DNA from: Macrostomum lignano
Lineage: Eukaryota
Reading direction: 5' to 3'
Length of the DNA stretch: 63,640 nucleotides
NCBI GenBank assembly: GCA_002269645.1
Contig: NIVC01004033.1
Span: 1-63,640 of the forward strand
A program made the translations under genes and the position numbers. Shown here one piece after another: positions 3,234-52,000 of the stretch; positions within the stretch are counted from its first letter, which is position 1, and each line of letters starts with the position of its first letter. A model generated the notes under the pieces. That model ran no database searches. It was given only the letters and a program-made list of their open reading frames with translations, and was not told the DNA's origin.

Positions 3234-4018
3234 TTTGATGCCGTTTTTGGCGCTTCTCAACTGTGATTTTCGCGCCAAGTAGCATCGCCAAAAATGCTAT
3301 CCCGTAGCAAATTTAAATTCTTGGATTCCAGTATAAATATTGACTTAATAAAACAAAAAATATCTTTGTGAAATTTTAGCGCATGATTCTTTAGAAAGGC
3401 GCTAATCTTATTAGTAGCATTTATATTCTACGTTTTAATTTTAATTCTAGTATTTAAAATTTAGACGTAACTTGGACTTTTCGTAAAGAATAGTATATAG
3501 TTAAGCACCAAAATTAACTTTCAGGATCACCTAAAATATCTTATACCTAAATAATATTAGTAGGTAGCCAACTGAAATATTAGCTAAATGCATTATTCGG
3601 GTATTTATGGTCGAAAGCAGCTCAATTAAGTTTTTCTAATATAAGGCTTGATTTAGAATTGCAGATTTATGTGCAAATTTTACTTCTACATGTATTTATT
3701 TAAATGAAAGAGACTTTTTGCGCAAGATGGTGCAGTCAGGTTTTCTGAAAGAATTTTGAATTTCAATAGGGAATCAGACACTATATGTTCACCCTTAGCT
3801 GCGCCAACGGTTGAGAGATCTAAAATTACATGTAAAGATATTTACATGCAGATCGGAAGTTGAGGTTGCGCATTTTTCTGAAAACATCCTCTTTATGGTG
3901 TACCATTTTGATCTTTGAGCGCATTATTAGTAGTATATAAACTGTACTTGCTAATAATGTATTGTATACTTTTAATATTTGAATTTGTGCAGTTTACTCG
4001 TACTTGGATTGTACAGTA

Positions 4019-7376
<3,358 letters not shown>

Positions 7377-8249
7377 TGGATGTACAGTACATGTAAATGT
7401 ATGTGCAACATTTGCATAGACGAAAATGTAACTCTGCACATACATGTAAGTGCATGCAGTAAAGTTTTGTGTTATATTTACATTTTGTAGTCCTTTTAGC
7501 CATAGAATATTTTCGCGTGGAATGTCAAAAGTAATTCGCGCAGCAACAATAAATGCAATATTAATTTTTTTCAATAGCTTTCTTATATTTTTTGCGGAAA
7601 ATTTGAACTAAAACAAAGAAAAAAACATGTCAACGCATCTTGTCTTTCTGTTTTTTGCTACTTGTCTCTTCACGCTGAATTCGCTTGGCAACTGTTGCAA
7701 GAAAAGTGAGTCTTTTATTCTTGAAGGCTTTATACTCGTATTTCGCTATTAAAAGCGATCGTGTACTTTCCGGTTGCGGCAATCTTTCGTTCGGAATCGA
7801 AGTACATGTAGTATCGTACATGTATAGGCGTACTCGTACATATGTTGTAATTTTTAATTACATGTAATTAACAAATTCATTATCGAGAGCTACAATGCAC
7901 CCAGTATTTCTAGAAACGCTAGTCGTTTTTCAGATGCAGACAAGAAATTGATCTGCGTCTTGCATTGTTAAAACTTTTGAGGTGCTCCTTCTGAAAAATT
8001 AGTAGGCGATGACTTAGAGCAAGCTCAGCGATTTAACGAAACAACCCTCGAGTCGACTCCATGTGGATAATTGTCCCGGAGTTGTCCTGCGATCCGCACC
8101 CATGAGGGACAACCCCGAAGGCGCAGACAGTGTACATGCCTGAGGATTAGACAGTCAGGGCTGCTGTTCACTCCGTGTGAGCGTGTGTATGAATGCGTGC
8201 CTGCATACAGTATTATAGCGCGCTTGTACGTGTTTAGGGAGTCAGCGGA

Positions 8250-14221: not shown

Positions 14222-14627
14222 CTTTGTGCTACAAAAACTTTCTTTTCGAGTCTATTAAAAACTATATGGTTAAAAATTAGGTATCATATGCTTATTGCAA
14301 ATCCTTTAATAGAGACTTACAATTTCTACAGCTTATAGAACTTTAAGTCTCGGATCTTCCAGTTTACAACTCCCGTGCCCAACTGAACCATAGAATACGA
14401 GTACAAAGCCAACTTCTCTATTTCGAGAAACATGAAGATCCTCAGATAATAAAGAAGTGTGGCACAATGCAGTAATTTCTGGATTCTCTTGTTCATGCTA
14501 ATCAGCAGTAGGAATATAAAGCCATTTTCCGCCCGTCGAACTACCAAACAACCCCCCCCCCCGAAAAGTTTTGCTGCGCGGAAGCGAAACAGCCGCGCAG
14601 GCGCACGAAATTCAAGAACACGGACTA

Positions 14628-15193
14628 GCGGGTCGCTATCATAAACCCGAAAAATCACAACTCCGAAAGCGCTTTCCATCATAAACCCAAAATATCATAA
14701 ACCCGAAATATCACGACTCCGAAAGCGCTTTCCATCATAAACCCAAAATATCATAAACCCGAAATATCACAAACCCGAAATATCACAAACCCGAAATATC
14801 ATAACTCCAAAAAACAAAATAGCAACACCCATCATAAACCCGAAATATCATAAACCCGAAAAATCACATCTCGGAAAACCAAAAGATGGCAAAATAGCAT
14901 TGCCCATCATAAACCCGAAAAATCACAACTCCGAAAACCAAAATAGTGTTATACGTTGCTAGAACTTTCGGAGTTATGATATTTCGGGTTTGTGATATTT
15001 CGGGTTTACATGTATGATGGGCAATGCTATTTTTGTTTTCGGAGTTGTGATTTTTCGGGTTTATGATAGTTCGGGTTTATGATGTGTGTTGCTATTAATT
15101 TCGGAGTTATGATATTTCGGGTTTGTGATATTTCGGGTTTATGATCGAAAGCGCTTTTCGGAGTTGTGATTTTTCGGGTTTGTGATGCCCCCG
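14628..15193. mobile_element. Foldback/MITE-like element whose long inverted arms are built from ~15-bp tandem units (tcataaacccgaaata)
   Basis: 14628-14940 is mirrored by 14960-15193; ends cgggtcgctatcataaacccg / cgggtttgtgatgcccccg. No TSD found. Confidence 0.8.
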
Positions 15194-19076: not shown

Positions 19077-21404
19077 GACATGACACTTCTTATGATTTTT
19101 TAAATGACGCTTCTATGATTTTTATATGATGCTTCTACGATTTTTTACATGACGCTTCTATGACTTTTTTACATGACGCTTCTATGATTTTTTAAATGAC
19201 GCTTCTATGATTTTTATATGACGCTTCTACGATTTTTACATGACGCTTCTATGATTTTTTACATGACGCTTCTATGATTTTTTACATGACGCTTCTACGA
19301 TTCTTTACATGACGCTTCTACGATTCTTTACATGACGCTTCTATGATTGTTTACATGACGCTTCTATGATTGTTTACATGACGCTTCTATGATTGTTTAC
19401 ATGACGCTTCTATGATTGTTTACATGACGCTTCTACGATTTTTTACATGACGCTTCTATGATTGTTTACATGACGCTTCTATGACTTTTTACATGACGCT
19501 TCTATGATTTTTTACATGACGGTTCTATGATTGTTTACATGACGCTTCTATGATTTTTTAAATGACGCTTCTACGATTCTTTGCATGACGCTTTTATGAT
19601 TTTTTACATGACGCTTCTATGATTTTTTAAATGACGCTTCTATGATTTTTAAATGACGCTTCTACGATTTTTTACATGACGCTTCTATGACTTTTTTACA
19701 TGACGCTTCTATGATTTTTTACATGACGCTTCTATGATTGTTTACATGACGCTTCTACGATTTTTTACATGACGCTTCTATGATTTTTTACATGACGCTT
19801 CTATGATTGTTTACATGACGCTTCTATGATTTTTTAAATGACGCTTCTACGATTCTTTACATGACGCTTCTATGATTTTTTACATGACGCTTCTATGATT
19901 TTTTAAATGACGCTTCTATGATTTTTATATGACGCTTCTACGATTTTTTACATGACGCTTCTATGACTTTTTTACATGACGCTTCTATGATTTTTTACAT
20001 GACGCTTCTATGATTGTTTACATGACGCTTCTACGATTTTTTACATGACGCTTCTTTGATTGTTTACATGACGCTTCTATGACTTTTTACATGACGCTTC
20101 TATGATTTTTTACATGACGGTTCTATGATTGTTTACATGACGCTTCTATGATTTTTATATGACGCTTCTACGATTCTTTACATGACGCTTCTATGATTTT
20201 TTACATGACGCTTCTATGATTTTTTAAATGACGCTTCTATGATTTTTATATGACGCTTCTACGATTTTTTACATGACGCTTCTATGATTTTTTACATGAC
20301 GCTTCTATGATTTTTTACATGACGCTTCTACGATTGTTTACATGACGCTTCTATGACTTTTTTACATGACGCTTCTATGATTTTTTACATGACGCTTCTA
20401 TGATTTTTATATGACGCTTCTACGATTCTTTACATGACGCTTCTATGATTTTTTACATGACGCTTTTATGATTTTTTAAATGACGCTTCTAAGATTTTTA
20501 TATGACGCTTCTATGATTTTTTACATGACGCTTCTATGATTTTTTACATGACGCTTCTTTGGATTTTTACATGACGCTTCTATGATTGTTTACATGACGC
20601 TTCTATGATTGTTTACATGACGCTTCTATGGTTTTTTAAATGACGCTTCTATGATTTTTATATGACGCTTCTACGATTGTTTACATGACGCTTCTATGAC
20701 TTTTTTACATGACGCTTCTATGATTTTTTACATGACGCTTCTATGATTGTTTACATGACGCTTCTATGATTTTTACATGACGCTTCTACGATTTTTTACA
20801 TGACGCTTCTATGATTTTTTACATGACGCTTCTATGATTTTTTACATGACGCTTCTACGATTCTTTACATGACGCTTCTACGATTCTTTACATGACGCTT
20901 CTATGATTGTTTACATGACGCTTCTATGATTGTTTACATGACGCTTCTATGATTGTTTACATGACGCTTCTACGATTTTTTACATGACGCTTCTATGATT
21001 GTTTACATGACGCTTCTATGATTTTTATATGACGCTTCTACGATTTTTTACATGACGCTTCTATGATTTTTTACATGACGCTTCTATGATTTTTACATGA
21101 CGCTTCTATGATTTTTATATGACGCTTCTACGATTTTTTACATGACGCTTCTATGATTTTTTACATGACGCTTCTATGATCGTTTACATGACGCTTCTAT
21201 GATTTTTTACATGATGCTTCTATGATTTTTATATGACGCTTCTACGATTTTTTACATGACGCTTCTATGATTTTTTAGATGACGCTTCTATGATTGTTTA
21301 CATGACGCTTCTATGATTTTTTACATGACGCTTCTATGATTTTTACATGACGCTTCTATGATTTTTTATATGACGCTTCTATGATTTTTTTACATGACGC
21401 TTCT
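19077..21404. repeat. 23-bp satellite (acatgacgcttctatgatttttt), ~100 copies
   Basis: Continuous tandem array with variant monomers. Confidence 0.98.
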
Positions 21405-21524: not shown

Positions 21525-22621
21525 GCTCTCATCAAATTTTGCACTTATATAATTCAACACTTTAAAATCCAAGCATAGAGTAAATCACACAAAGCAGTTA
21601 TGACATAATCAGTTTCTCAGTCAGTCAGTATCAGTTAACAATATGGTTACGCAATTTAAATCAAGTCTGGTGCTACGCTTCCACACTGCATTTTCAATTC
21701 AAGTTGGAGTTACAATTCAGTTATGATGCAATCTATTTCAGAATCAGAATCAACCAGTCAGTTTTTTCTCTAGCATTCTTACAATGCATTTCAAGTCGAA
21801 AAGTTTGCTTGAACTTTGCAAAAAAGCATGTTTTTCGAATATTTAATGCCTTTAGCATCGAGCAATTTCTTAGCCACGATGCATGTACCGTCACAGGAAA
21901 ATTTCTGATATAATATACATTTTTTGTAACTTTGCAGCAAAATAAAAGACAAAAAAATAATCTAATCTGTTGAAAAGAATTTATTCAATTTGTTTAAAAA
22001 GGCTTTGTTGCTTTTACTAAAGCAAATCTCTTAAAAAATACTAGCATATTTTTGCTTTCAAGTTATTTTGCTAGTCTTGCATGTACCGTGCAATGCAGAT
22101 GAGGCCCTTAGGGTACAATGTGCAGTGTATATAAGATTTCCAAATAATCTTGGTGTGCAGTATATAGGATCAAGTTTTGTGTCATGCATGGAATATCTTT
22201 GGGACTATGGGACTAATATTGCAAAAATGAATCATATTGTATAAAAGACTCTTTTTGGCATATAATTTGGTTGATTGTTTATCTTTCTTGTCTATACTAT
22301 TTATAGCAAAAATCAATATGCTTAAATATTTGTTTAAATGCTTTATTACAAGCTTAAAATCTAAAAAGCTTAAAATTTATGCCTAAAAGTGAACTTTCTA
22401 ATCTTTTTTCCGTTTAACGCTAACTTTCCCATGTGATTTTATGAATTGCATACTAGAATACCAAAGTTATTCCAAAGAATACCAAAGTATATTATAAGAT
22501 ATATATCTGCCATACAACCACACTCTAGAACACTTAAAAATTTGGGTATACATTAGCCTAGAATACCAAAGTTAGGCAAGCACAGTTGGTGTGCATGATT
22601 CCTAAAAAATATATATACAAC

Positions 22622-22722
22622 CTATAATTTGGTTGTATATACAATAATATATAATTTGGTTGTATATACAATAATATATAATTTGGTTGTATATACAATA
22701 ATATATAATTTGGTTGTATATA
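22622..22722. repeat. 27-bp tandem repeat x~4 inside the hAT
   Basis: tataatttggttgtatatacaataata units. Confidence 0.9.
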
Positions 22723-24838
22723 CATTTTCGACCATGACCTTGTTAAGCACTTGTTGCTTTTTTCATTGCCAAGCACGTTGCTCAGTAATTGGATGGTGTT
22801 GTATGTAGAATTCCAGCGGATAGTGTTTGGCACAACTAGTTTCCAACCAATGGCTTTGTAAATATTATCAAATACATTGCTATTGCAACCCTGAGCTTTC
22901 CACAATGCCTGAGCTTTGTCCATTGTCTTGTGCAACTGGGTTTTCAATATAGAGTCTGAATTGATTGCTGCAATACTGTTTGTAGCAGCTACTAAGTTCA
23001 GTGTGTAAGTAGCGCATTGCATGTGAGCTGGTAAGTGGTTGTAGGTATTCAGGGGAAGCAGTCCCCAGTTCCTCATCAACAGACTATTACCAATGGCAGG
23101 TACTCCTTAGTTTCACTGTTGTCATCACTAGTTTTTGACTCTCCAATAGAATCTAGTTTGTCACCATCTGCAGTCCCTCTGCCAGTCTTAGGCTCAGCAT
23201 CTTCTGAATAATATTGACTTAATTGAATATTGACTTAATTGTTGTTTCAAATTTCTTTTATGTTGATGAATGATGAATTGATGATGTACCAATTTAATTT
23301 TGCTTTGTAATTATAAGTTTAACTTAGTAGCATATAGCTTAGAGTATCAGCAGCAGCCTACAAGCACTAAGAAAGAACTTAAGAAGTGGGCAAGTGGCAA
23401 ACCTTCACAAATTAGAGCCATTGTCCATAGTTGTTTGAACTATTTTTGTCTCAATCCCAAACTTCGTATGCACAGCCAGCAGTGCTTATGCAAGGGCAAT
23501 ACCGGTATGACTGCCAAATAGGCATACAAAAGCAATTACTGCAAATTGGCGGGTTCTATGCTTATTTAACCAGTGGACTATCACACTGAGATAGGAGCGC
23601 TGAGTGCTAGATGTCCAGTAGTCTACAGTCATTGCTACATGCTTTGCTTGGCCTAAGAGCCTATTTGAAATTTAAATTTGAAATTTAATTAGAATTCAAA
23701 CAGGTCTAAAAATTGAGGTTCATACAAGTTTAAGTAGTTAAGGCTAGGCTAGAATACTTAACTGATAAGATGCTGTTCCATTAAAGCATGTTTCTAACTT
23801 AGACAACAACCTAATATGCCGCGTGATGGCAGGGTCCTTTGTGGGTTGAGTCCACTCACATAGTAAGCAAAATCCTCTGACTCCACAATCTGCAAAGGTA
23901 GTATGCAGCTCACTATGCAGCTCAGTAAGCGACTGTTGGCCTCTTTTTGTGAAACATCTAGATTAGAGCAACTGAAACACTAGGACAAGCTGAGCTGTTA
24001 AGCCTGTTGCACTTTTTGGCGAGGGCTTGGACTTGGACCAGTAGCTCTTAGAGAAGGACTGGCCCTTGGTGCCAATGCCAATGATGGCAAAGGTGAAACT
24101 GCTGATACTAATGCACTTGCACTAGCAGATGATGATGATGATTGCAACATAGAAATCTGGTTGGAACTTGGTATTTTCATAGCAAGATGTAGTCTTGGAA
24201 GCAGATTGAGACTCAGACTCAGTAGCTGGTAGACCACTAGTGCAGGTTGGATCAGGACCAGAAGAAGCTGATCACATATTAAGAAAAGAAAAGGATAGCT
24301 CAATGATTAATAATGAATTAAATAAATTACTTACGTAAGTGATAAGTCAATGCTAAGAAATTAAGAATATTACAAATATATTTCTGTTTAGTCTTTACTT
24401 TATATACTAGATTTCTAGTTTGTGTATAGTTCTGGTCTAAATATTAAGTTTATTTGTATATGTTTAAGTATGTATTATAATTTTTTTACTTCTCATCTCA
24501 ATATTTATTTTATTTACTTTTTGTTATTATTTACAGGCAAATTGGTAATCTAGAAATTAGAATATATATTTATTTTTTATGAGTCATGACTCATAATTAA
24601 AAATTCATTGCTTATTAAATATAATATATGACATTAGTTTATTCTTAATCTTAATTAATAATTAGTATAATTTATAAGTAAACTAGTAGTAACTAATAAG
24701 CCTTAGTCTTTGACTCCTTAGAAAATTAGTTATAGTAGAGACGTAGGTTGTAGAGTAAGAGTATGTATAGAGCAAGAAATTCTAGAATCAACCTATTACC
24801 TAACCTACAGCTACAAAAACAAGGCAAGCTATTTGACT

Positions 24839-25248
24839 TCTTCTTCATATTTGGGTCACGGACATTATAGCTGTAGCTAATAGGACTGGGTGCCTAGCAC
24901 CATACAGCTGGGTCGCTAACTCACGTGGGCGGACAGTAGACAACGGAATCCAATTTGCGGCCTGCGGCGGGTGGCCAGAGAGTGTGGGGACCCAAATCCC
25001 GGTGCGCAGGGCTCCTCCACAGACCGACTTACACTGTTAAAACCGCCATCCACCACCAACCCAGCAGTGGGGGACAACTCTCCCAGGCAGCATACCCAGG
25101 GGTGAGACCAATTCGTCACCCCAGGGACATACAGGGACGCACAAAGCTCCTGCCACATTGGCGAGGTGTCCAGGGGCGCAACGTGGACGCTGGTCTTGTG
25201 CCACCCGCTGTTTGACTTGTTGACATTGCTGCAGCTGCAGCCCCTTTC
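24839..25248 (-). mobile_element. ~410-bp non-autonomous retroelement (ribozyme head, GAA tail) inserted in the hAT
   Basis: GC-rich island in AT-rich DNA; ends ..gacccaaatatGAAGAAGA; flanked by the direct repeat tttgact (24832-24838, 25249-25255); no credible ORF. Confidence 0.75.
25105..25245 (-). ncRNA. HDV-like ribozyme
   Basis: Minus strand: P1 AGGGGC (25245-40) / GCCCCT (25177-72); P2 AGACCA (25196-91) / TGGTCT (25110-05); P3 GCG/TGC; L3 TCCACGT; P1.1 GG; P4 CACCTC/GGGGTG with inner stems; J4/2 A-CGAA-T (catalytic C at 25115). Confidence 0.88.
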
Positions 25249-26299
25249 TTTGACTGCTTAGAGTTTGAGGAAGAACTAGAATAGACATTCTTATTCTTCA
25301 CTTCCCATTTTTGAAAAACAAAATACTTTTTAATATGAGGAGAAAGATTAGGGTTTTGATTCTGCAATTCTTGTGCTTCATCATTGTCATCAGTGACTTC
25401 AATTATGTGAGTGTCAGCAATAGCATCAGCATTGGTATTCAAATTCTTGGACTTAGTAGAATCTGACTCTGTTTCTGACATGATGACAATTGACAATGAG
25501 TTGATGACAATGTCACAAATCAGTGAATCACAATTTATTCACGTATCAAATCAAATCAAATCAGATCACAATGATGATCAGCTGGCTGAGTGGCCTGTAT
25601 GGCTGTATGCTGTATTATTTTATATTATTAGTTATTAACTTATTACTTATTATTATTATTAATAATTATTTAATTACAAAATAGCCTAAAGAAAGGAAAG
25701 CAAAACTGCAAAAGCCTACATAGTAATTCAGTAAATTCCTGTAAATTCTAAATACTATTATGTTACGTACATTAAAAAAGATTGTAAAAGTTAAAATCAG
25801 TAAAACAAAATTGTTTAGAAGACTGAGAACCCTAAAAAACAATGTAAAAGAAAATTTGTTGTCTAAAATTTAGCAAATTTCAATTTTAGCAAATTTGAGC
25901 TAAATGTAATGGCACTTTTGTAGCATATGCTAAGTTATTCAATTTAGCAATATTAGCGAATTTCAAAAATCATAGCAGTGCTATATTCAAATTTAGCACC
26001 CGTTATGCCCATCACTGTTAAGAGCATGTAATATATATCCAAAAATTTAGGCACACATTGGCTTTGCAGTTTATATGGTAAATAGAAAAAATTAATAATA
26101 AGTTTATATATCGTAATTTCTTGACAAATATTTAAATAGACAATTCAAATAAACAAGTCCTCTTTTTAACAAGGATGCTCAATGCAGGCTTTATTTTAGC
26201 CATCTTTTTACACATTTGTAAGCTTTATTTTGATAGAAAAAATATTTTATTTAATTATAGGAAAATGTAAAAGACTACAGTTTAGGAACACAAAAGTTT

Positions 26300-28250
26300 A
26301 TAGTATTACAACTCTGCTTTAAGTTTGAAGGGAATTTTCTAATTTTTTATAAAGATCTTTTTGAATAGAGAATAATTTCTATACCTCTATGCCTATTTTG
26401 GCAACAATTATATGTTTCACACATATAGTATAGTGCTTCCTCTAAGGAGATTTTTTGTTTAAAACATTATTGTATATTTCCTATTCAACTCTAAGTCAAA
26501 AAAAGACTCCTGCTTTTGCTAAAAATATTTGCTTGTTGTTAGTTAAATTTCAAGGGAAAGCTTTTGCATGTCCTTGCTTTTAATTGACATTACAAGTGCT
26601 CCTAATCAACATTTAATTTAGAAAAAATTGCACTTGAAATGTGTCTACAATGAATTTTTAAAGGCCTTAGTAATAGTTCATGGATTTTTTGTTGCAATAT
26701 AGTGCTGAATAGTTTTGTCTTTGAGTCCTAAATACCAATTACAATTTTTATGCATTTCTCAACTATAAACTAAGGCCTTTAGCAATTAAAATGACTGAGA
26801 AGTTTTGTTGATACTTAAAAGTATCAAAGCAAAGCAAAAGCAAAGTCAAAGCAAACTATCAAGGTGTAACATGAGCCAAAGTTATTAAACAAAACAATGG
26901 CAATAAAGTAAGAAAAAAATACAGTGTGCTAGTTCTCCTAATTTTTTTCAATTGTCTTAGCTATTGATCTATAGATAGCACTCTGCATATGCTAGAATTA
27001 ATAGATAAAGGCCAGCAAGACTTATGATACCAAAATAGACACAAGGGGCATTCAATCTACATTGAAGAAATATTAAAAGTTGGACCTTTTTTGAGCAATA
27101 ACATTAAGAATATAGTCAAATTTGTTAACCTTATCCAATCTATTTCTGTATCCCTCCTAGGTGGATCCTCAAATCAACATTGACCTTGAATAAAAGTTGC
27201 ACATCACCAGTATGAGACTTTTTACCTAACAAGAAATTTTGAAAGGCATAGTGCAGATTATTGGACAAAGAAAAGTAGATATAGTTGCCATTTCACATTG
27301 CTTTGACTTGTGGATAAGAGTTAGAAATGTATCATTGAAATGCAAAATATGTTGTTGGGATTTCTATACCAAACCTAGCAAGAAGTTGAAGAAGGAAGAT
27401 AATTGCAGAGCAGGGAAGGGTTGAAGAGAAGAAAAAAGTGTGCATAACTCTGGAAATATGCTACCATTTCTTGGTTGTACACTACTAGCAGCACAACCAT
27501 TAGAAAAAGTAGGCTTGGCTAATTGTTCTTCAATATTAACAATAGTCTTGTCTGCAACACCCACAGCATCCTCATCCACAATACTTGTGGCATCCTCATC
27601 CACAATACCTGTGGCATCTTTGTCCAAAAAACGGCTGCTTCCAAATTGCTTAAATCATAGTCCTCCTTAGGCAGAAAGAGCTTACCAAGAAAAGACGCCA
27701 CACTGCAAAACTGATGTGCATGGCAAAGATGGCAAAGGACATTCCAGCTTGAGATCTAGAGCAGGTGTTGACTGGCATTCTAGGTGTGACAGTTTAAAAG
27801 CCCAGCTCATGCAAACTTTAGGATTGCCATTAGTTTCAGCGCCATCAGTGATGAAATGATCTAAAGGCTTGTGTCAAAAATGCTTTTTTGGATCAGAAAG
27901 TCTTTCGACATATTCAATTTCATGCAGCATTGATTCAATTGGCCACTTTTTATATGTCTTATGCTGTGCTAAATGATCCCAATAAGTCTAACGATTGATA
28001 GTCATCTTCACACTAAAAAATGGTTGCATACTGTTTGACTCCATCAGAAGTAGCCATTACAATTGTCTTCCAAGATGGATTCTCCTTTTGGTATTTGTAT
28101 TTTGTTTCATTCCAATCAATGCATGTCTTTTGATACAATTTTAAATGTCTTGTCACTTATGAAGAACACTAGTAGGACTTTGCATTGTTCAAATTGAATG
28201 AACATCTAAAATAAGAAATAATGCATGAATTAGACTTTAGACAACATGTT
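26300..28250 (-). mobile_element. Second, heavily decayed AT-rich hAT-like remnant
   Basis: Fragment EEQLAKPTFSNGCAASSVQ resembles the CxxH region after an acidic loop; the rest is stop-riddled. Confidence 0.35.
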
Positions 28251-28622: not shown

Positions 28623-29793
28623 GCCGCCCCTAGGCGGACCAGGCGGTTCCTTTGGTCCAGCGCCTCTGCGTCCGCCGCCGATGCAGCAGCAGCAGCAGCA
28701 GCAGAGCTTCCGCGGTCCTCCGCCTAGAGGTCCTCCACCGCGGGGACCGCCGCCTAACAGCGCCGGAATCCGTAGTGGCGGCGGCAGCGGGGGCGGAGGT
28801 GGTGGAGGAGGCAGCCTGCCGCCTATGCTTCGCGGCCAGCCGCCTCCTGGCTGGCGGCCTCCGATAAGTGGCCCGCCGCCATCGCCGCAGCAGCAGCGCG
28901 GCGCTCCCCGCCGCTTGGCGGCCTGAGCGGATCCCGGCCGATGCCACCGGGCGGGGTTGGGCCTCCGCAGCAGCAGCAGCAGCAGCCTCGCCCTCCAATG
29001 CCAGGCCAGGGCGGCTCCGGCCAGCAGCAGCAGTCGGGTATGCCACCAGCGCCGCCAAATCTTAGCGTGCCGCCGCCCGGCATGCCGACAGACCGGTCCG
29101 GGATGCCGCCTCCGCCCGGCTTCATGCCCTCCGGCCCGCCGCCGCCCACGCCAGTCTCTATGGTTGGCGGCGGCTCCGGGGGGCCGCCCGGCCAGCATGC
29201 CATGCAGCAGCCGCCGCCGCACATGGCCTCGCCTATGGGTCTGCGCGGGGCCCCGCCGCCTGGCATGCCGCCGCATCGTCAGCAGGCGCCGCCGCAGCAT
29301 TTGATGCCGAATCAGAATTCCTCCTCATCCGGGATGATGCGGCCGCCTATGCCGCACATGATGGGCGGCCCGATGCAGCAGCAGCAGCAGCCTCATCCGC
29401 AGCATCTCGGCCCTCCCGGGTACGGAATGCCGCCGCCGTCGTTTGGTGGCCCGCCGCCGCCTCATCTGATGGGCCCGCCGCCCAACTCAATGATGGGCGG
29501 CGCCCCGCCGCCGCCGCCTCCGCCGCCGCCAGAGAATGTGTGGGTTGAGAACTGCACGCCGGAAGGAAAGCCGTACTTTTATCATCTGCGCAGCCGCGAG
29601 ACTCGCTGGGAACGGCCTGAAGGGGCTCGGATTATGACTCAGGTAGGCATGACTGCTCCGATAGCAACCAGACCATGTAAGCTGGCAGACAGATTTAAAT
29701 ATGTAATAGGAATGTAGGTAACCGCTTAGTAAGATGAAAGCATATAGCCAAATCGTGAGGTGGTCAGACAGATCTACTGATAATAGTCTTGTG

Positions 29794-29887
<94 letters not shown>

Positions 29888-32800
29888 GAGACGCTAAGGC
29901 AGGCAGACAGGACAGACGCTAAGGGAGACAGACAGGCCGACAGACAAGGCAAAAGCACTAGCATGCTGCATGCTGCACCATTTTTCAGGCGGAGGTCGAC
30001 GCTGTAGCCGAAGGCGCCCCTCCAGGTGCGGCGGCTGGCGGCCCCATGTCTGCCGGAGGGTCGGCCGTCCGATCCGGCATGCCGCCGGCGACTTCGGCTC
30101 CGCCTCTGTTCGGCATGTCCGGCGGGCTGCCATCCATGAGCCAGCAACAGCAGCAGCAGCCGCCGCCGCCCAACGGTCCCGCCAAGCCGCCAGAAGTGGC
30201 CGAATGGGCCGAGTACCGGGCGGACGATGGCCGGCCATATTATCATAACCTGCGCACCAGCGAAACCGTCTGGGAGAAGCCGGCCCCGCTGCTAGCCTGG
30301 GAGGCTGGCGGCAAGCCGCCTGCGCCGGCCGCGGCACCGCCGCCTATTATGAAAGAGACTCAGGCGGCGGCTTCCTTGACGGCGGCCAAAGATGGAGCAG
30401 TTCCGACCAGCGTTGCCACGACTGGCGTCAGTCAGCAGGTGGCGGAGGTGGACAAGCGGCAAGCGGCTGCTCAGTCTCAGCAGCAGCAGCAGGACAAGTC
30501 CCGGCCCGTGAAGAGCCAGCCGGTGCCCGGCACCCCCTGGTGTGTTGTTTGGACAGGCGACGATCGGGTGTTCTTCTTCAATCCATCCAAGCGGCTGTCG
30601 CTGTGGGACCGGCCGGAGGAGCTGGTTGGCGTCAAGGAGGTCGAAAAAATTCTCGGCAAAGGCGCGGCAGCGGAGAAACGCGCGGCCGGCAAATCGGCCA
30701 CCGGCGCGTCGGCAGCTAAAAAAAAGAAAGTCTCTTCTGCTAAGCTTGATACAAAAAAGAAAAAGACCGCCGACGGGCAGAAGAAGAAGAAAAGAAAGCG
30801 CAGCGGCTCGGACGACGACGATGACGATGAAGAAGACGGCGAAGACGACGAGTCCGGCACCGACGAGGACGGCGACGATTCCAATGACGACGACGACGAT
30901 GACGATGACGAGGATCGAAGAAAGGTGAAGCGGCGCCGCCGGGCCGCTGCCGAGAAGAAGCGGCAGCAGCTGCAGAAGAAGCGACGCCGAGACAGCGGCA
31001 GCAGCGGCTCTAATCAGGATGACGACGACGAGGACGACGATGAGGACAAAGAAGACAAGGAGGACGAGGAGAACGAGGACCTCGGCGAAGATGACGATGA
31101 CGACAAGCCGCTGCTGGAGCGGGACAAGATTGAGCCGGGAAAGGTAAACGCGTTCGAGGCGGAGGTGCAGGCGGCGCGGGAGCGGGCCAGCCTGCCGTTG
31201 GACGCCCGGATGCAGCAGTTCCGGGAGATGCTGGCGGAGAAGCAGGTGTCAGCTTTCAGCACTTGGGACAAAGAGCTGCACAAGATCGTGTTTGACCCGC
31301 GCTATCTGCTGCTGCCCAGCAAGGAGCGCAAGCTGGTGTTCGACCAGTACATGAAGGAGAGGGCCGAGGAGGAGCGGCTGGAGAAGAACAGGAAGCTGAG
31401 GGAGAAGAAGGAGGCCTACAAAGCGCTGCTCGAGGAGGCTAAAGTTAGCGCCAAGTGAGTAGCGGATTAGTTTAGTTTATTAGTGATTTAAGGTAAAGGT
31501 CATTGTTCTAACTTTTTAAAAAGGTATATGGAAAATGCCTTCCGTAAAATGCCTTTGTAAATATCAAAGTCGTTTTCGCACTACCAAAGTTGGCCAATTT
31601 ATTAGCAGACTCAAATCCAGTGTTTCACGCATCCTATCTGTACAGGTGTCGTTTTCAAAACTTATTCTGTTGAACAGAACCTTGCTTACATTGAAAAAAC
31701 GAAGACACAAACACTGTTGCGGGAGTGAGAAAGTAGATCACTGTAAGATTATTGGTCGGTGCCAGTCAGACTTTTGACTAAAAATACTTGAATCAATGTA
31801 CATAAAAACACAAACCTAGTCTCAGTGCTCAACTGCAACATTGCTTTAAACTGTTCTTGCTTGAGTCCAATTTATTAATTAATAGTTTAATCAACAGCCA
31901 GTCACCCTGCAGATGACTAACCCGTTGAAAACTTTACCGTGCTTAGGAGAGTCGCGAAAAAGTCGTCCTGGATTCGTGTTAGCGCTTAACTTTCTATTAA
32001 CTCTAGTAGACTAGTAGAGTTGTTATAAATGCGAAATGCGATTTTCATCGATAAAGTGACGCAGATGCACTTTAGACGCAACTCAGTTATTCCACAGCGA
32101 CTCTACGACCCCAGAGTCAGTTGCGTCGCCCCAGAGTCGCAGACAATAAAACGCCTTAGTTTGACTCCTAGGCGACTTTTTGACGACTTTTTGGCGACTT
32201 GTAGTTGTAACGCGACGTCACGTCGTTTTAGAGTCGTCTAAAGTTCTTTCCTATTTTATGTTACCTGCAACGAATCTTGGGCGACGCAAGTGACTCTGGG
32301 ACGCTACTTGGCCTCGAAACCCCTCCAAAATAACACCTATTTTGATAACACCAATAATCTTTCTAATGCTTTTAAAGGCAGATTCTATCCCTCTGAGTTA
32401 AGTTACTTCTTCATCTGTAAATGATCTTTGGTTTTCTATTATTGGTTTCATTTAGTGCCTATATTATCGCCAACTTGCAGAACCACGTTCCAGGACTTCT
32501 CGGCCAGATGGGGCAAAGACGACCGGTTCAAGGGCATCGAAAAGGCTCGCGAACGGGAGCTGCTGTTTCACGATTACATCACGGAGGATTTGAAGAAACA
32601 GGAGAGGGAGGAGAGGCAGCGTGAGAAGGAAAAGGTGAGTCCAAATTATTGGGATAAGTTTTGTGCATTCTTAACAAACAATTTCCATGTCTGCTTGGCA
32701 TAATTAACTAAGGTTTAGTAATAGTTATATGGAAGAATATGTTTGCATTCGTGTCTGGATTGCCCGGGCCTAGCTGTCAGGGAGTTGGGTCTATCTGGAC

Positions 32801-38821: not shown

Positions 38822-39235
38822 TAACTTGACGCCCTCCAAGGCCTGGGCGTGTGTTTTTCTTTTGTACACTTCTTTTAAGTGCCAAATAATTTCTTGTTGT
38901 GGACCTCACCTCGCGCACTAATCCGAATTTAATCACCCGATCCTTCCCAAATCTCGGGAGCCGTTTTGCACGTAGCGCACTGGGGGGGGGACAGATTTGT
39001 CATCATCAATGCCGAATTTATAGTTAACTGTATTATTTTACCTGCTCTAGTCAGATGTCAATCTGATTTATTACTGACGTTTGTCTTCTGATGCCTTTAT
39101 TGTATTCGTACGCGCTTCAGTCTTAGCATTTCTTGCTTCAGCAACAACTCAGTGTCGCTGCTGCTGCTAGTGGAAAAGTTTAATGCTTTTATTATTGATA
39201 TCAAAGTGACTAATGATGCTTTAATTAACTAGCGA

Positions 39236-39269
<34 letters not shown>

Positions 39270-39289
39270 CCTGTCTGTCTGTCTGTCCC

Positions 39290-39321
<32 letters not shown>

Positions 39322-39355
39322 CCTGTCTGTCTGTCCCTGTCTGTCTGTCTGTCCC

Positions 39356-39407
<52 letters not shown>

Positions 39408-39471
39408 CCTGTCTGTCTGTCCCTGTCTGTCTGTCTTTCTGTCTGTCTGTCCCTGTCTGTCTGTCTGTCCC

Positions 39472-39511
<40 letters not shown>

Positions 39512-39593
39512 CCTGTCTGTCTGTCCCTGTCTGTCTGTCTGTCTGTCTGTCCCTGTCTGTCTGTCTGTCCCTGTCTGTCTGTCTGTCTGTCCC

Positions 39594-39633
<40 letters not shown>

Positions 39634-40058
39634 CCTGTCTGTCTGTCCCTGTCTGTCTGTCTGTCTGTGACTTCTATCAGTTTCTATCTTTCATTAACTC
39701 AGTAAAAATGCAAAGTTTTAAAATCGTTTTGCCATTTTTCTGCACACAATATTATCTTAACGATCCTTCCCAAATCTCGGGAGCCGTTTTGCACGTAGCG
39801 CACTGGGGGGGGGACAGATTTGTCATCATCAATGCCGAATTTATAGTTAACTGTATTATTTTACCTGCTCTAGTCAGATGTCAATCTGATTTATTACTGA
39901 CGTTTGTCTTCTGATGCCTTTATTGTATTCGTACGCGCTTCAGTCTTAGCATTTCTTGCTTCAGCAACAACTCAGTGTCGCTGCTGCTGCTAGTGGAAAA
40001 GTTTAATGCTTTTATTATTGATATCAAAGTGACTAATGATGCTTTAATTAACTAGCGA

Positions 40059-40092
<34 letters not shown>

Positions 40093-40134
40093 CCTGTCTG
40101 TCTGTCTGTCCCTGTCTGTCTGTCTGTCTGTCCC

Positions 40135-40174
<40 letters not shown>

Positions 40175-40190
40175 CCTGTCTGTCTGTCCC

Positions 40191-40237
<47 letters not shown>

Positions 40238-40335
40238 GTCTGTCTGTCTGTCTGTCTGTGTCTGTCTGCCTGTCTGTCTGTCTGTCTGCCTGTCTGTCTG
40301 TCTGTCTGTGTCTGTCTGTCTGTCTGTCTCTCTGC

Positions 40336-40378
<43 letters not shown>

Positions 40379-40440
40379 GTCTGTCTGTCTCTCTGCTGTC
40401 TGTCTTTCTGTCTGTCTGTCTGTCTGTCTGTGTGTCTGAC

Positions 40441-40472
<32 letters not shown>

Positions 40473-43400
40473 CGCCTGCCTGTCTGTCTCTCTGACAGAC
40501 TGTCTGACTGTTTGTGAGCCTCTATGACTTCTATCAGTTTCTATCTTTCATTAACTCAGTAAAAATGCAAAGTTTTAAAATCGTTTTGCCATTTTTCTGC
40601 ACACAATATTATCTTAACGATTCAAATTGCTACAAAAGACAAGTGTGGCAAATTTGCTAGCCAAAACTCGTCCCTTGTTTTCATGCCGTGACCCAGAAGT
40701 CAGGTCGCTACTCTTCGCATTGAGACAAAAATAATGATATATTGAATTATGTTACGTCACCAATGCAGCAATACTCTCGTAACAAAGTTTTGTATTATTT
40801 ATTAAACTGCCGAAATCATAAACTAGTTTGTAATGACAATTAGCCAGGAATGCAGGACCCAGCCTAGAATCTGCTAGTCGCATACAGTGCACGCATTGAT
40901 TATTGATACAGTTTCAGGGAGATTATCATCACGAAAGTTGCTTTCACTTCAGGCAAAGAAAATCGACTTGTTTGTTGCGTTTTTTTCATTTTTCCAGTTT
41001 CTTAATTATGATGTGCGATTAATAAAAAAATGCAAGTTATTTACTTTTCATTTGTATCCCCAATCCAGGTGTCTGTTTCGAAGAGTTAAGTACATTAGTG
41101 TGCTCTTTCCCTAGCAGATCATCGACCAGTTGTATTTTTAGTATTAAGAGCCAGTCAGTTTTTATGGTATATTTAATACATAAGAATGATTGGTTTATCT
41201 GCAGACTTTATAGTCGCTATCAAATATTCGTGCTAGATGTCTATGCAAATTATTTTGTTTCAAAACAATGACCTAAAATTATCTATAATTTTTCTTTAAA
41301 ATGAACGAACTGGGGAACTGAGAGGGTGTAGCATTTTTTAACTCAGGCCATGTACATTCAGGACTCATTCTTACACCCTCCATATCGGCGGGCGCTCCGT
41401 CCTCCGGTCCACCGCTCCCGTTTTAGGCGAAGTCAGACTTCCTCAAGCTGCTGAAGGAGCAGTCGGGCCTCAGTCGGTCGTCGCGTTGGAGCGAGGTCCG
41501 CAAGACCATCGACTCAGATCCGCGCTACCGGGCAGTGGAGAGCAGCTCAAGGCGGGAGGACTACTTCAAGGATTACATCAAAGGATTAGATAGTGTGAGC
41601 TCATCAATCTGTTTGAGAATTTGTTTCTTTGAGAAGGCTTGTGTCTGGACTGGGGTCCTAGATGGCCACTACCGCTGTTTAGTTGGGTTAGATAAGTGGG
41701 TGAAGGTAGGTAGATAATGTGAGGTAGATAAGCAGGTGAGGTAGCTTAGCAGGTGAGGTAGATAAGCAGGTTAGGTAGATAAGCAGGTGAGGTAGCTAAG
41801 CAGGTGAGGTAGATAAGAAGGTGAGGTAGATAAGCAAGTGAGGTAGATAAGCAGGTGAGGTAGATAAGCAGGTGAGGTATTGCATAAATAAGCAGGTGAG
41901 GTAGATAAGCAGGTGAGGTAGATAAGCAGGTTAGGTAGATAAGCAGGTGAGGTAGCTAAGCAGGTTAGGTAGCTAAGCAGGTTAGGTAGATAAGCAGGTG
42001 AGATAGATAAGCAGGTGAGGTAGATAAGCAGGTGAGGTAGATAAGCAAGTGAGGTAGAAAAGCAGGTGAGGTAGATAAGCAGGTGAGGTAGCTAAGCAGG
42101 TGAGGTAGCTAAGCAGGTTAGGTAGATAAGCAGGTGAGGTAGATAAGCAGGTGAGGTAGATAAGCAGGTGAGGTAGATAAGCAAGTGAGGTAGATAAGCA
42201 GGTGAGGTAGATAAGCAGGTGAGGTAGATAAGCAGGTGAGGTAGATAAGCAAGTGAGGTAGATAAGCAGGTGAGGTAGATAAGCAGGTGAGGTAGATAAG
42301 CAGGCGATTTAGATAAGCAAGTGAGGTAGATAAGCAGGTGAGGTAGATAAGCAGGTGAGGTAGATAAGCAGGTGAGGTAGATAAGCAGGTGAGGTAGATA
42401 AGCGAGGTAGGATAGATAATCTAGGTAAGCAGAGGAGCCAGTTAAGGTAGGTGGATAATCCGATCCCAATCCTCTATCCTCTATCCTTCATCAGAAGAGC
42501 GACCGGCACCACGGTCACCGCGGTGAAGCTTTAGAGAAGTCCAGCGCTGGTGATACCAGCACCAAAGATGGTCAACAGAGCGGCGAGCCTGCCGCTGGCG
42601 CCTCGGCCGCCGCTTCAGATGACGAAGCCGACAATGAGGAAGCCGAAGACGAGGAGACTCGGCGCGTTCGGGAGCGCCGCGAGCGCCAAGAGGCCAGCAT
42701 TAGGGAGCGCCAGAAGGCCGTCAAAGAGGAGATGGCGTCTATTCTGCGCGAGCGGGACAAGGTAAACATGTCTAGCTGATGTTCTCCTCGGGTTCGTATA
42801 TATTTAATATATAAGCCGTTAGGTAGAGATGTGAGGAGATGGGGAAGATAGGGGAGAAAATGGGAAAGGTAAGGACAGGATGGGGAAGCTGAAGGAGAGG
42901 ATGGGGAAGCTGATGGAGAGGATGGGGAAGATGAGGGAGATGATGGGGAACATAAGGGAGAGGATGGGGAACATGAGGGAGAGGATGAGGAACATGAGGG
43001 AGAGGATGTGGAAGAAGGGAGGGTGGGGGAGTAGAAGGGAAAGATAAGGGAGAGGATATGGAAGGGTATTGAAAAGATAGAGGAGAGGGTGAGGGAGGGG
43101 ATGGAAAGATGGGGAGAGGGTGGGAAAGATGGGGGAGAGGATGGGAAAGATGGGGAGAGGGTGGGGAAGATGGGGGAGAGGGTCTGGAAGATGGGGAAGA
43201 GGGTGGGGAAGATGGGGAAGAGGATGGGAAAGATGGGGGAGGGGATGGGAAAGATGGGGGAGGATGGGAAAGATGGGGGAGAGGGTGGGGAAGATGGGGG
43301 AGAGGGTGGGGAAGATGGGGGAGAGGATGGGAAAGATGGGGGAGGGGATGGGAAAGATGGGGGAGAGGGTGGGGAAGATGGGGGAGAGGATGGGAAAGAT

Positions 43401-49959: not shown

Positions 49960-52000
49960 AGGGAATACAAAATCCCGAGTTTTGCCAATCCCGGGATTCT
50001 CGGGATCGGGATATCCCGGAGATGGAGAGCTGGTAGCCTAGGTTGTGGTCCGATGGCAAGGTCCAACTCCAACTGTTCTAATCCCAACTACGATCAAGGA
50101 GTTTTGAAGGTATAGGGACTTACTAATACAAAATCGAGAGTTTTGCCAATCCCGGGATTCTCGGGATCGGGATATCCCGGACTTTGCCAATCCCGGGATC
50201 CCGACAAATTGGGCCGGGATCCCGGGATTTAAAAAGTTTAATCTTTGTTGATGCAACTTTGGTTTACGAAGCCATCTAATCTGATTTTATAGGGCTTTCA
50301 AAATAAAGTAGAACAAAACAAAATATTTTGCTAACAAGAAACTGACAATGAGCTCTGAATTTGGAGTGTGATGTACGAACTGGCATAGTAGACGTTCTTT
50401 TTTACATGCCAGGATCAGCTCAGGAAAATCCCACTTTAATGTGATGTCAACTGAGGATTGGGGAATGATAGCTTACAGAGCTATGGCCCGAGGCACTGTT
50501 CCAATCCCAACTACGGCCAAGGAGTTTTGAAGGTACGGACTGCTTAAAGTACATGTAGTTCTGCCACCACCCCTAAGCTGGGAATCTAAAAGGTGTCCTG
50601 ACAGTGCTGAGAATGAGGTCTTTTGCATAGGGGGCAGGGGCTTCTGATCTGCGCAAGGTCGAGGCCCCCTGATTTTACGCTCGTAGCTGGGTTTGAGATA
50701 GAGGGGGGGGGGTTCAAATCAACAATGATTTGATTCCCGTCTGGCAAGCTATAGCGCTGCATGTGATCGGAGACAATGAAGAATTGGCCTCTATTGCTTT
50801 AGGCTCTGTGCACAGGTTTTAGAATAACAATAAGTACATTAGTCTGCGAGTAACATTCACACACTTGCATAACTCGTATGTACATTTTTACACCTGAAAT
50901 CTCCTTCGATATGCCAATGCTAACAGCTTCAGTTTTGTATCCCTGTAGCCCTAGCCTTCTCACTAGCCTGCATGTTTAAAAGATTAATAAATCAAAGCAG
51001 GCCGACTCGGTTATGATTATGAATTATGATTTTCACCTGACAGTAGCTCAGCTGCAGATACTATACTACTCGAGAATGAATGATTGAATTATTGCAAACC
51101 GGGATTGGGATCCCGATGGTCGATACCGGGATTTTCGAATCCCAGACAAGTGTGATCCCGGTAGAATCCCGGGATGAAATTTATGAAGCTTATGAAATTT
51201 CGAGCTTATGAAAGCAACCCGGATAAGGGAATACAATCCCGGGATCCCGAAATCCCGGGATTAGGTCCAAATCCCGGGCCGGGATTTCGATTATGCCTGA
51301 GGGTTGCTTTCACAAGCTCGAAATTTCACAACCTCGAAACCAGTTACTTTCATAAGCTCGAAATTTCATAAGTTCAAAATTTCACAACCTCGAAAACCAT
51401 TCTAGCAGCCCACTTTCACAAACCCGAAACTTCACAAGCTCGAAATTTCATATCCTCGAAAATTATCCGCGAAGTCGGCTGCTAAAATGGTTTTCGAGGT
51501 TGTGAAATTTCGAGCTTGTGAAGCGGCCCCCCTTATCCCGGCCCGGGATCCCACGGGATCGAAAATGTTTCTGATTTTTTTGGTGTAATTTTGGTTTACG
51601 CAGCCATCTAACATGATTTTAAAGGGCTTTCAATGATAAAGGTAGAACAGAAAAAAATATTTTGCAAGCGCAATGAGCTCTGAATTGATGTGTGATGTAC
51701 GGGCTGGCGTAATAGACGTGCTTTTTTACATGCCAGTTTCAGCTCAGGAAAATCACACTTGAATTTGATGTCAACTGGGGATTGGGGAATGATAGCTTAC
51801 AGAGCTATGGCCCGAGGTACTGATACCAGGGTAGAAGGGTATCAGACCTCACCCTCCCAGGGGCACCCGCCACCCGCCCTAGATGGAGAATTGGTAGCTT
51901 CGGTTGTGGGTGGTCCAATCGCAAGGTCCCACTATTCTAATCCCAACTTCATGTGGATGTGGCCAAGGAGTTTCGAAGGTAGGGAGCTAGTAGAATGAAT
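49960..52000. mobile_element. Mosaic of MITE-like pieces (atcccgggat family, foldback arms) and duplicated spacer blocks
   Basis: Repeated palindromic atcccgggat; 50255-50500 is similar to 51585-51830; 50020-50115 is similar to 51880-51985. Confidence 0.65.
51300..51530. mobile_element. Foldback-like element related to 14628-15193 (unit tcacaagctcgaaatt)
   Basis: gggttgctttcacaagctcgaaatttcacaacctcgaaa is mirrored by ttttcgaggttgtgaaatttcgagcttgtgaagcggcccc; an orphan arm lies at 51174-51222. Confidence 0.7.

Follow-up and report, generated by a model that had tools for sequence, protein, structure and literature searches.

The window analysed here, a stretch of 63,640 nucleotides (63.6 kb) from contig NIVC01004033.1 of the flatworm Macrostomum lignano, is animal DNA of sharply alternating composition with many minisatellites. 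Within the remnants of a hAT-type transposase, its minus strand carries a GC-rich island with a candidate hepatitis delta virus (HDV)-like self-cleaving ribozyme near one end and a short GAA tail at the other, which probably represents a dead copy of a short non-coding retroelement. Along the minus strand, in 30-nt bins, a GC content of 23-27% gives way to about 47% near 25270-25211 and to 57-67% from 25210 to about 24880, after which it falls to 30-37%. The island terminates on this strand in ...ATATGAAGAAGA (24846-24839; in longer context ...CCCAAATATGAAGAAGA), and AGTCAAA (24832-24838), the putative 3' target-site duplication, follows directly after the tail GAAGAAGA, which holds about 2.7 GAA units. 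An inner AGTCAAA at 25211-25217, 4 nt upstream of the predicted cleavage site, is the preferred 5' target-site duplication; the duplication becomes 8 nt, AAGTCAAA, if position 25218 and the last A of the tail are included. The preferred extent of the element is accordingly 372 bp (24839-25210, minus strand), consisting of 4 nt (CAGC), the ribozyme, the body and the GAA tail, and it is delimited by AGTCAAA on both sides, by the jump in GC content, and by the similarity to a second copy that runs from 25206.

An earlier note on this DNA had described the island as GC-rich, free of open reading frames (ORFs), GAA-tailed, and without a tRNA, 7SL or 5S head, and these four features were borne out. 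The bins of 57-67% GC stand within surroundings of 23-37%, and the tail lies at 24846-24839 on the minus strand as described. ARAGORN detected no tRNA in the element, Rfam gave no match to a tRNA, 5S or 7SL head even at E<=10, the B box is absent from the element, and A-box-like strings occur only with two mismatches. What marks a classical short interspersed nuclear element (SINE), an RNA polymerase III (Pol III) head of tRNA, 7SL or 5S origin bearing A and B boxes, is thus lacking. The open frames of the element had no match in Pfam, and the body (24849-25104, minus strand), which is without a protein-family match, contains a splice-donor-like GTGAGT at 24923-24918. No terminal inverted repeat was seen by eye at the two ends, where no repeat search was made. 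Compared with shuffled sequences, neither the whole element (z = 0.0) nor its 3' 152 nt (z = +1.3) folds more stably, and blastn with a word size of 7 found no further copy of the element inside the window.

The candidate HDV-like ribozyme occupies 102 nt (25105-25206, minus strand), with the predicted cut between C25207 and G25206. It can be drawn as a nested double pseudoknot in which five helices, all of standard pairs, follow the canonical order P1, P1.1, P2, P3, and P4. P1 consists of a 5' strand GGGUGGC (25200-25206, with U25203 bulged) and a 3' strand GCCCCU (25172-25177), which form 6 bp, the first of them being the G.U wobble G25206.U25172. J1/2 reads ACA and leads into the 5' strand of P2, AGACCA (25191-25196), which forms a 6-bp duplex of -7.0 kcal/mol with the 3' strand UGGUCU (25105-25110). 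P3 (25178-25190) pairs GCG (25190-25188) with UGC (25180-25178) over 3 bp and closes the loop L3, UCCACGU (25187-25181), in a sequence resembling the Rfam HDV consensus; P1.1 is made of two pairs, C25186-G25170 and C25185-G25171. The P4 domain spans 52 nt (25117-25168) and is closed by 7 bp between CACCUCG (25168-25162) and UGGGGUG (25123-25117). It is followed by J4/2, A-CGAAU (25111-25116), which lies directly before the 3' strand of P2 and contains the candidate catalytic C25115; as a sequence pattern, its CGAAU fits the C-N-A-A-U of the Rfam consensus. Taken together, P2 (-7.0 kcal/mol) and the nested helices (-24.3 kcal/mol) come to about the same energy as the unconstrained minimum free energy of -36.0 kcal/mol.

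Permissive Rfam searching of 24700-25400 returned three matches, two of which fall on one minus-strand site: HDV_ribozyme with 19 bits (25208-25149) and CPEB3_ribozyme with 13.9 bits (25217-25151), with E values of 3.2 and 1.3, respectively, over 4227 families. These two models independently converge on the same strand and the same 5' core, and the alignment covers P1, P3, L3, and the P1 return strand well, skipping P4. The Rfam families drz-Agam-1 and drz-Agam-2-2 gave no match at E<=10. A shortfall in Rfam scores is to be expected for divergent members, because the models rest on narrow seed sets. When a descriptor of the fold features was run on both strands of the window (127 kb), it retrieved the candidate site and one other, 51288-51126 on the minus strand, which was rejected as an artefact of a CCCGGG-palindrome low-complexity repeat. 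The descriptor had no match when the window was block-shuffled 40 times with dinucleotides preserved, and none in 3000 shuffled versions of the element. The 5' half of the fold alone is not rare: 3.6% of the element shuffles contain it, as do five sites of the unshuffled window. With this half fixed, a fitting P4, J4/2, and P2 appeared in 0.37% of shuffles when P2 had at least 5 bp and in 0.07% when it had at least 6 bp, that is, a matching 3' half in 14-74 of 20000 shuffles. For any one such sequence, the joint chance of obtaining the complete HDV-like fold lies on the order of 1e-4 to 1e-5. The ribozyme head proposed in the earlier note is retained here as an HDV-like fold near the 5' end of the element, which draws on sub-threshold Rfam matches and on our own descriptor.

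With a six-frame composite of the element's translations as query, a second copy of the element was found in a WD-repeat protein of M. lignano with 428 residues (UniRef100_A0A1I8HT69, P0121), the sole match among 5.8 billion proteins. Exhaustive HMMER searching over 1.84 billion representative proteins likewise returned A0A1I8HT69 only and no other relative. A word-index search with the 113-residue sense frame gave no candidate, despite seven 5-residue words in common with A0A1I8HT69; since it missed this protein, its negative results on short queries are weak. Residues 271-291 of A0A1I8HT69 (GWHETSVHVAPLDTPPMWQEL) are identical to the translation of 25206-25144 at 19 of the 21 positions, and residues 291-347 correspond to 25090-24920, read in a second sense frame. 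The similarity sets in exactly where the cut is predicted, at 25206, stops at the GTGAGT of the element (24923-24918), and lies outside the WD40 domains, which end near residue 200. In the model of A0A1I8HT69, about 75 residues (within 270-347) come from the element copy, the ribozyme core included. This stretch fits an exonisation in which the element provided the splice donor, or is possibly an artefact of the gene model. The start of similarity at 25206 could also result from use of the CAG at 25210-25208 as an acceptor, and the upstream residues ..PQR are compatible with a shared CAGC. In A0A1I8HT69 the head is joined to the body as in the window copy, without an ORF of a long interspersed nuclear element (LINE) between them. 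As this join is common to both copies, the short form itself was apparently propagated. Scans of metagenomes with a degenerate peptide pattern and with an exact 23-mer of the ribozyme core revealed no relative. The family suggested in the earlier note thus gains a second copy in A0A1I8HT69, but none further in the window.

On balance we consider it probable that the island is a dead copy of a short, non-coding retroelement of M. lignano of the type without long terminal repeats (non-LTR), whose 5' end would have been formed by an HDV-like ribozyme and whose 3' end would have been used in trans by a LINE. The in silico observations are the fold, tail and direct repeats, a lack of both coding capacity and Pol III head, and the second short copy. 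Self-cleavage, a partner LINE, read-through transcription, and a step of target-primed reverse transcription are inferred by analogy with R2, RTE, baggins, and L1Tc/NARTc. By this analogy, a source copy within some RNA polymerase II (Pol II) transcription unit would be read through, and the ribozyme would fold and cut immediately 5' of G+1 (G25206), giving the element its 5' end without a promoter of its own. The GAA-tailed 3' end would then be recognised by the reverse transcriptase of an autonomous LINE, and target-primed reverse transcription at an AGTCAAA site would insert the copy and duplicate 7-8 bp.

According to the earlier note, the island starts 3 nt before the ribozyme cut, with AGTCAAA as flank. 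Copies of AGTCAAA are indeed present at 25255-25249 and 24838-24832, but the geometry proved to be off by about 38-42 nt: the fold starts at G25206, which is 42 nt inside the earlier 5' boundary at 25248 and 4 nt (CAGC) after the inner AGTCAAA. A ribozyme starting at G25244, which would fit the distance of 3 nt, was judged by hand, the descriptor disallowing a J1/2 of the length needed, and was rejected with a P1 of only 4 contiguous pairs. The outer AGTCAAA (25255-25249) and the adjoining 31-nt stretch of about 50% GC (together 25218-25255, minus strand) are either hAT sequence or a leader of the element. If they were a leader, the element would measure 410 bp (25248-24839) with the outer AGTCAAA as flank, the ribozyme would lie 42 nt inside it, and the 42-nt leader would be inherited, so that copies would be made from uncleaved RNA or the 5' end would not be set by the ribozyme. 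We think this unlikely. It agrees with the GC content, already about 47% from about 25270-25250, and with the outer AGTCAAA as a perfect 7-mer; a weaker point concerns the second copy, where the stretch preceding GW (..QQQQQQPQR) could have the CAGC, and perhaps CAG/CAA-rich sequence, in common with 25248-25207 read in another frame. However, clear similarity to the second copy begins at 25206, P1 at G25244 has the few pairs given above, and each round of copying would lose a leader upstream of an active HDV-type cut. In addition, the AGTCAAA copies at 25255 and 24715 sit within a 16-nt imperfect repeat, TCTAAGnAGTCAAAGA, which covers 24722-24707 around the second of them and recurs in inverted orientation near 26487; they therefore have the appearance of a short hAT-internal motif, and the outer flank is probably hAT sequence. 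Because the HDV-like fold starts 4 nt past the inner AGTCAAA, the 372-bp element (25210-24839) with the inner copy as its 5' flank is the more likely one. With the inner boundary, an empty hAT site would be expected to read ...CAACAAGTCAAATAGCTTGCC..., in which AGTCAAA occurs once; with the outer one, it would read ...CTAAGCAGTCAAATAGC.... A motif of the form CTCTAAG(n)AGTCAAA(G) is present three times in or near the N-terminal region of the hAT transposase (25262-25247 and 24722-24707 on the minus strand, and about 26487-26500 on the plus strand, the last inverted), and it may be a hAT-internal repeat or a target favoured by the endonuclease of the element.

Several points weigh against a ribozyme-headed retroelement of this kind. 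The target-site duplication is ambiguous because AGTCAAA is locally enriched, with four copies in 540 bp of the minus strand (25255, 25217, 24838, and 24715) versus 13 on that strand in the whole window, and the tail is shorter than three GAA units. No partner LINE was found in the window or among the proteins searched, no protein among the 1.84 billion representatives besides A0A1I8HT69 shares frames with the element, and the documented loci, at least two, are only the window island and A0A1I8HT69. Rfam at gathering threshold gave no match in the whole window, the scores of 19 and 13.9 bits standing against thresholds of 50 (HDV) and 35 (CPEB3). The Rfam register takes a nearer J4/2, GCCAAU (25162-25157), essentially without P4, and the descriptor was composed after the candidate had been seen. 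P1 requires the bulged U25203, a hairpin at 25126-25095 on the minus strand (-18.1 kcal/mol) competes with the active fold, and the fold is drawn on one nucleotide sequence, the second copy being known as protein alone and so giving no covariation support. The copy in A0A1I8HT69 lacks about 53-57 nt (25143-25091, with a flanking GCT microhomology), and this gap covers the 3' strand of P4, J4/2, and the 3' strand of P2. The sub-threshold scores, the bulge, the hairpin, and the gap would all suit a true retroelement copy whose HDV-like motif does not function, being either a look-alike or a relic in decay, its 5' end having been formed by an internal Pol II promoter, by 5' truncation of a longer LINE, or by a ribozyme in another register such as the P4-less one of Rfam. 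That explanation seems to us doubtful. The short P4-less register is disfavoured, since its best P2 duplex is very weak (-2.1 versus -7.0 kcal/mol in the long model), a weakness that in itself speaks for a look-alike. The long model, on the other hand, has every helix together with the conserved features of J4/2 and L3, and the fold lies at the very 5' end in sense orientation. The gap is more simply explained if an old, exonised copy suffered a deletion, and this is favoured because an insertion of 57 nt that by chance completes a canonical fold would be odd and very unlikely. A further explanation takes the island not for a retroelement but for a piece of the WD-repeat gene (the A0A1I8HT69 exon plus adjacent intron), duplicated at the DNA level and captured by or repaired into the hAT copy, the HDV-like fold being fortuitous. 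Elements of the hAT family acquire host fragments, one other locus is documented and is annotated as coding there, and the island continues past the GTGAGT donor of the exon, as genomic sequence would. Such a duplicate is nevertheless quite improbable in our view: the complete fold has the low chance calculated above, its start coincides exactly with the start of similarity, direct repeats flank the island, which also has a GAA tail, and the matching part of A0A1I8HT69, outside the WD40 domains, has no relatives among the 1.84 billion representatives, as expected of a young exon derived from a transposon. The preferred explanation thus remains a retroelement copy headed by an HDV-like ribozyme. 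As to the competing hairpin, it uses CACCCCUG, a near-duplicate of the CACCUCG of P4, and would tie up J4/2 together with the 3' strand of both P4 and P2; it may represent a second conformation of the ribozyme, one that is inactive.

The hAT-type transposase remnants that host the insertion extend over 22561-25538 on the minus strand. They comprise an N-terminal ORF from 25496, the motif TVDYWTS near 23630, and the motifs CATYTLNLV (C..YTLNLV) and IRWNSTY within 23106-22561, all in minus frames; we take the three motifs to be the hallmark blocks D.W.S, C..H.LNL, and RWNS of hAT transposases. Searches of Pfam and of PDB sequences with the transposase gave no match, and a search for hAT terminal inverted repeats with an 8-bp duplication yielded AT-rich noise only. 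The frames of this AT-rich block are broken by stops and frameshifts, and judged by its sequence it is reasonable to regard the island as nested in a decayed and dead hAT copy. The earlier note had the island inside a hAT transposon and on the strand of its transposase. The orientation of the island does agree with that of the remnants, but the copy is dead and its ends were not found. Release of the element from a transposase transcript at this locus is speculation, because the copy is full of stops and frameshifts. A minisatellite of 2.3 kb (19091-21400) with a 23-bp unit, TATGATTTTTTACATGACGCTTC, adjoins the hAT remnants, and an inverted unit is found at 25955-25992, across the transposase; these units may be subterminal repeats of the hAT element.

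With regard to the partner, the assignment to RTE or Ingi/Vingi is unsupported guesswork, as it was made from the tail alone and the tail motif is not diagnostic. The window contains a LINE remnant, at about 4000-7380 on the plus strand, which was rejected as the partner: it has no nucleotide similarity to the element and no ribozyme signal at its 5' end, where a permissive Rfam search gave no ribozyme match. This remnant is GC-rich and internally deleted, with weak Pfam matches to an endonuclease (6048-6380) and to RNase H (C-terminal part, 6567-7358). A direct repeat of the TGTACAGTA type flanks it, and its tail at about 7359-7376 is a tandem 9-mer, (TAAGTCAAG)x2, whose unit resembles the AGTCAAA flanking the element.

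Formation of a 5' end by an HDV-like ribozyme has been established for R2, RTE, baggins, and L1Tc (PMC6765202, PMC3185411), and short, internally deleted derivatives have been documented as the R2 SIDEs (PMC3414825) and as NARTc and SIDER (PMC3383444, PMC4035085). The R2 SIDEs and R2/R1 hybrid SIDEs of Drosophila, described by Eickbush & Eickbush 2012 (PMC3414825), resemble the element in being short and ORF-less, with a 5' HDV-like ribozyme and a LINE-type 3' end. The likeness would extend to the propagation proposed here, that is, in trans by target-primed reverse transcription, with the 5' end derived from a self-cleaved co-transcript. However, R2 SIDEs are site-specific in ribosomal DNA (rDNA) and have both ends in common with a known R2 or R1 parent, whereas the element lies in a transposon in ordinary chromosomal DNA and has a GAA tail, a putative 7-8-bp duplication, and no known parent. 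In trypanosomatids, NARTc and L1Tc (and also RIME/ingi and SIDER) offer a comparable case of short non-autonomous elements that are dispersed, carry an HDV-like head, and are released from co-transcripts; NARTc and its LINE L1Tc have the HDV-like ribozyme Pr77/L1TcRz at nucleotide +1 in common (PMC3185411, PMC3383444, PMC4035085). These differ in that they belong to protists with polycistronic transcription, their 77-nt head doubles as a promoter, and they have a poly(A) tail, while the element is unrelated to them in sequence and its P4, at 52 nt, is much longer.

According to the summary in PMC6765202, the RTE and baggins LINEs (Ruminski et al. 2011) are promoter-less, are read through from introns or upstream elements, and have their 5' end cut by an HDV-like ribozyme. 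RTE-type elements often have 3' tails of short repeats, comparable to the GAA tail of the element, but both RTE and baggins are autonomous and coding, and the drz-Agam-1 and drz-Agam-2-2 models are unmatched here, as stated above. Within the same phylum, the Perere-3/SR3 LINEs of Schistosoma mansoni carry 5' twister-variant ribozymes and insert non-specifically with target-site duplications (PMC8501958). Their twister variants take the corresponding part in flatworms, and a 5' self-cleaving ribozyme in a non-LTR element would be common to them and the element, but the ribozyme is of the twister and not the HDV-like type, and the LINEs are autonomous. Classical SINEs and the Sm-alpha hammerhead SINE-like elements are, like the element, short, non-coding, and mobilised by LINEs in trans; what sets them apart is a Pol III head (tRNA, 7SL, or 5S) or a hammerhead motif, both of which are absent from the element.

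In the literature searched, no report of HDV-like ribozymes in Macrostomum was found, and the ribozymes described there for flatworm retrotransposons are twister variants and hammerheads only (PMC8501958, PMC6765202). The family may therefore be undescribed, while its mechanism has already been described for R2, RTE, baggins, and L1Tc/NARTc, and the element leaves the thinking on how ribozyme-headed elements work unchanged. If it is confirmed, the known hosts of retroelements headed by HDV-like ribozymes would include a free-living flatworm, the rare R2 SIDEs would have a counterpart that is dispersed and outside rDNA, and there would be a case of ribozyme-bearing transposon sequence exonised into a host protein. 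A bolder and rather speculative proposal, to which we give limited credence, is that M. lignano has still-active, promoter-less and ORF-less retroposons whose 5' end comes wholly from an HDV-like ribozyme acting on read-through transcripts. These would be a Pol III-free analogue of SINEs outside rDNA, and host genes would receive splice sites and coding sequence from their copies, in the manner of A0A1I8HT69. In a more unusual variant, the 4-42 nt upstream of the cut would be inherited and the ribozyme would have a role other than defining the 5' end. If such an active family exists, ribozyme-dependent retrotransposition could be tested in a live animal, since M. lignano can be made transgenic.

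Finally, the TCERG1 gene lies about 3.5 kb from the island on the opposite strand, with an exon at 30046-31458 (plus strand). This exon has 470 open codons with WW and FF domains, and its product is 96% identical to the TCERG1 protein of Macrostomum lignano. Around this region there are long arrays of (GACA)n / (CTGT)n, interrupted by CCCTGT and mutually inverted, at 29790-29910, 39220-39700, and 40050-40540. Farther along, around the rejected descriptor site (51120-51300, minus strand), ATCCCGGGAT-type palindromes are dense, and a perfect 7-bp P1 and P2 satisfied the HDV descriptor there. The 16-nt periodic repeats next to it, at 51310-51462, resemble those at 14623-14953.

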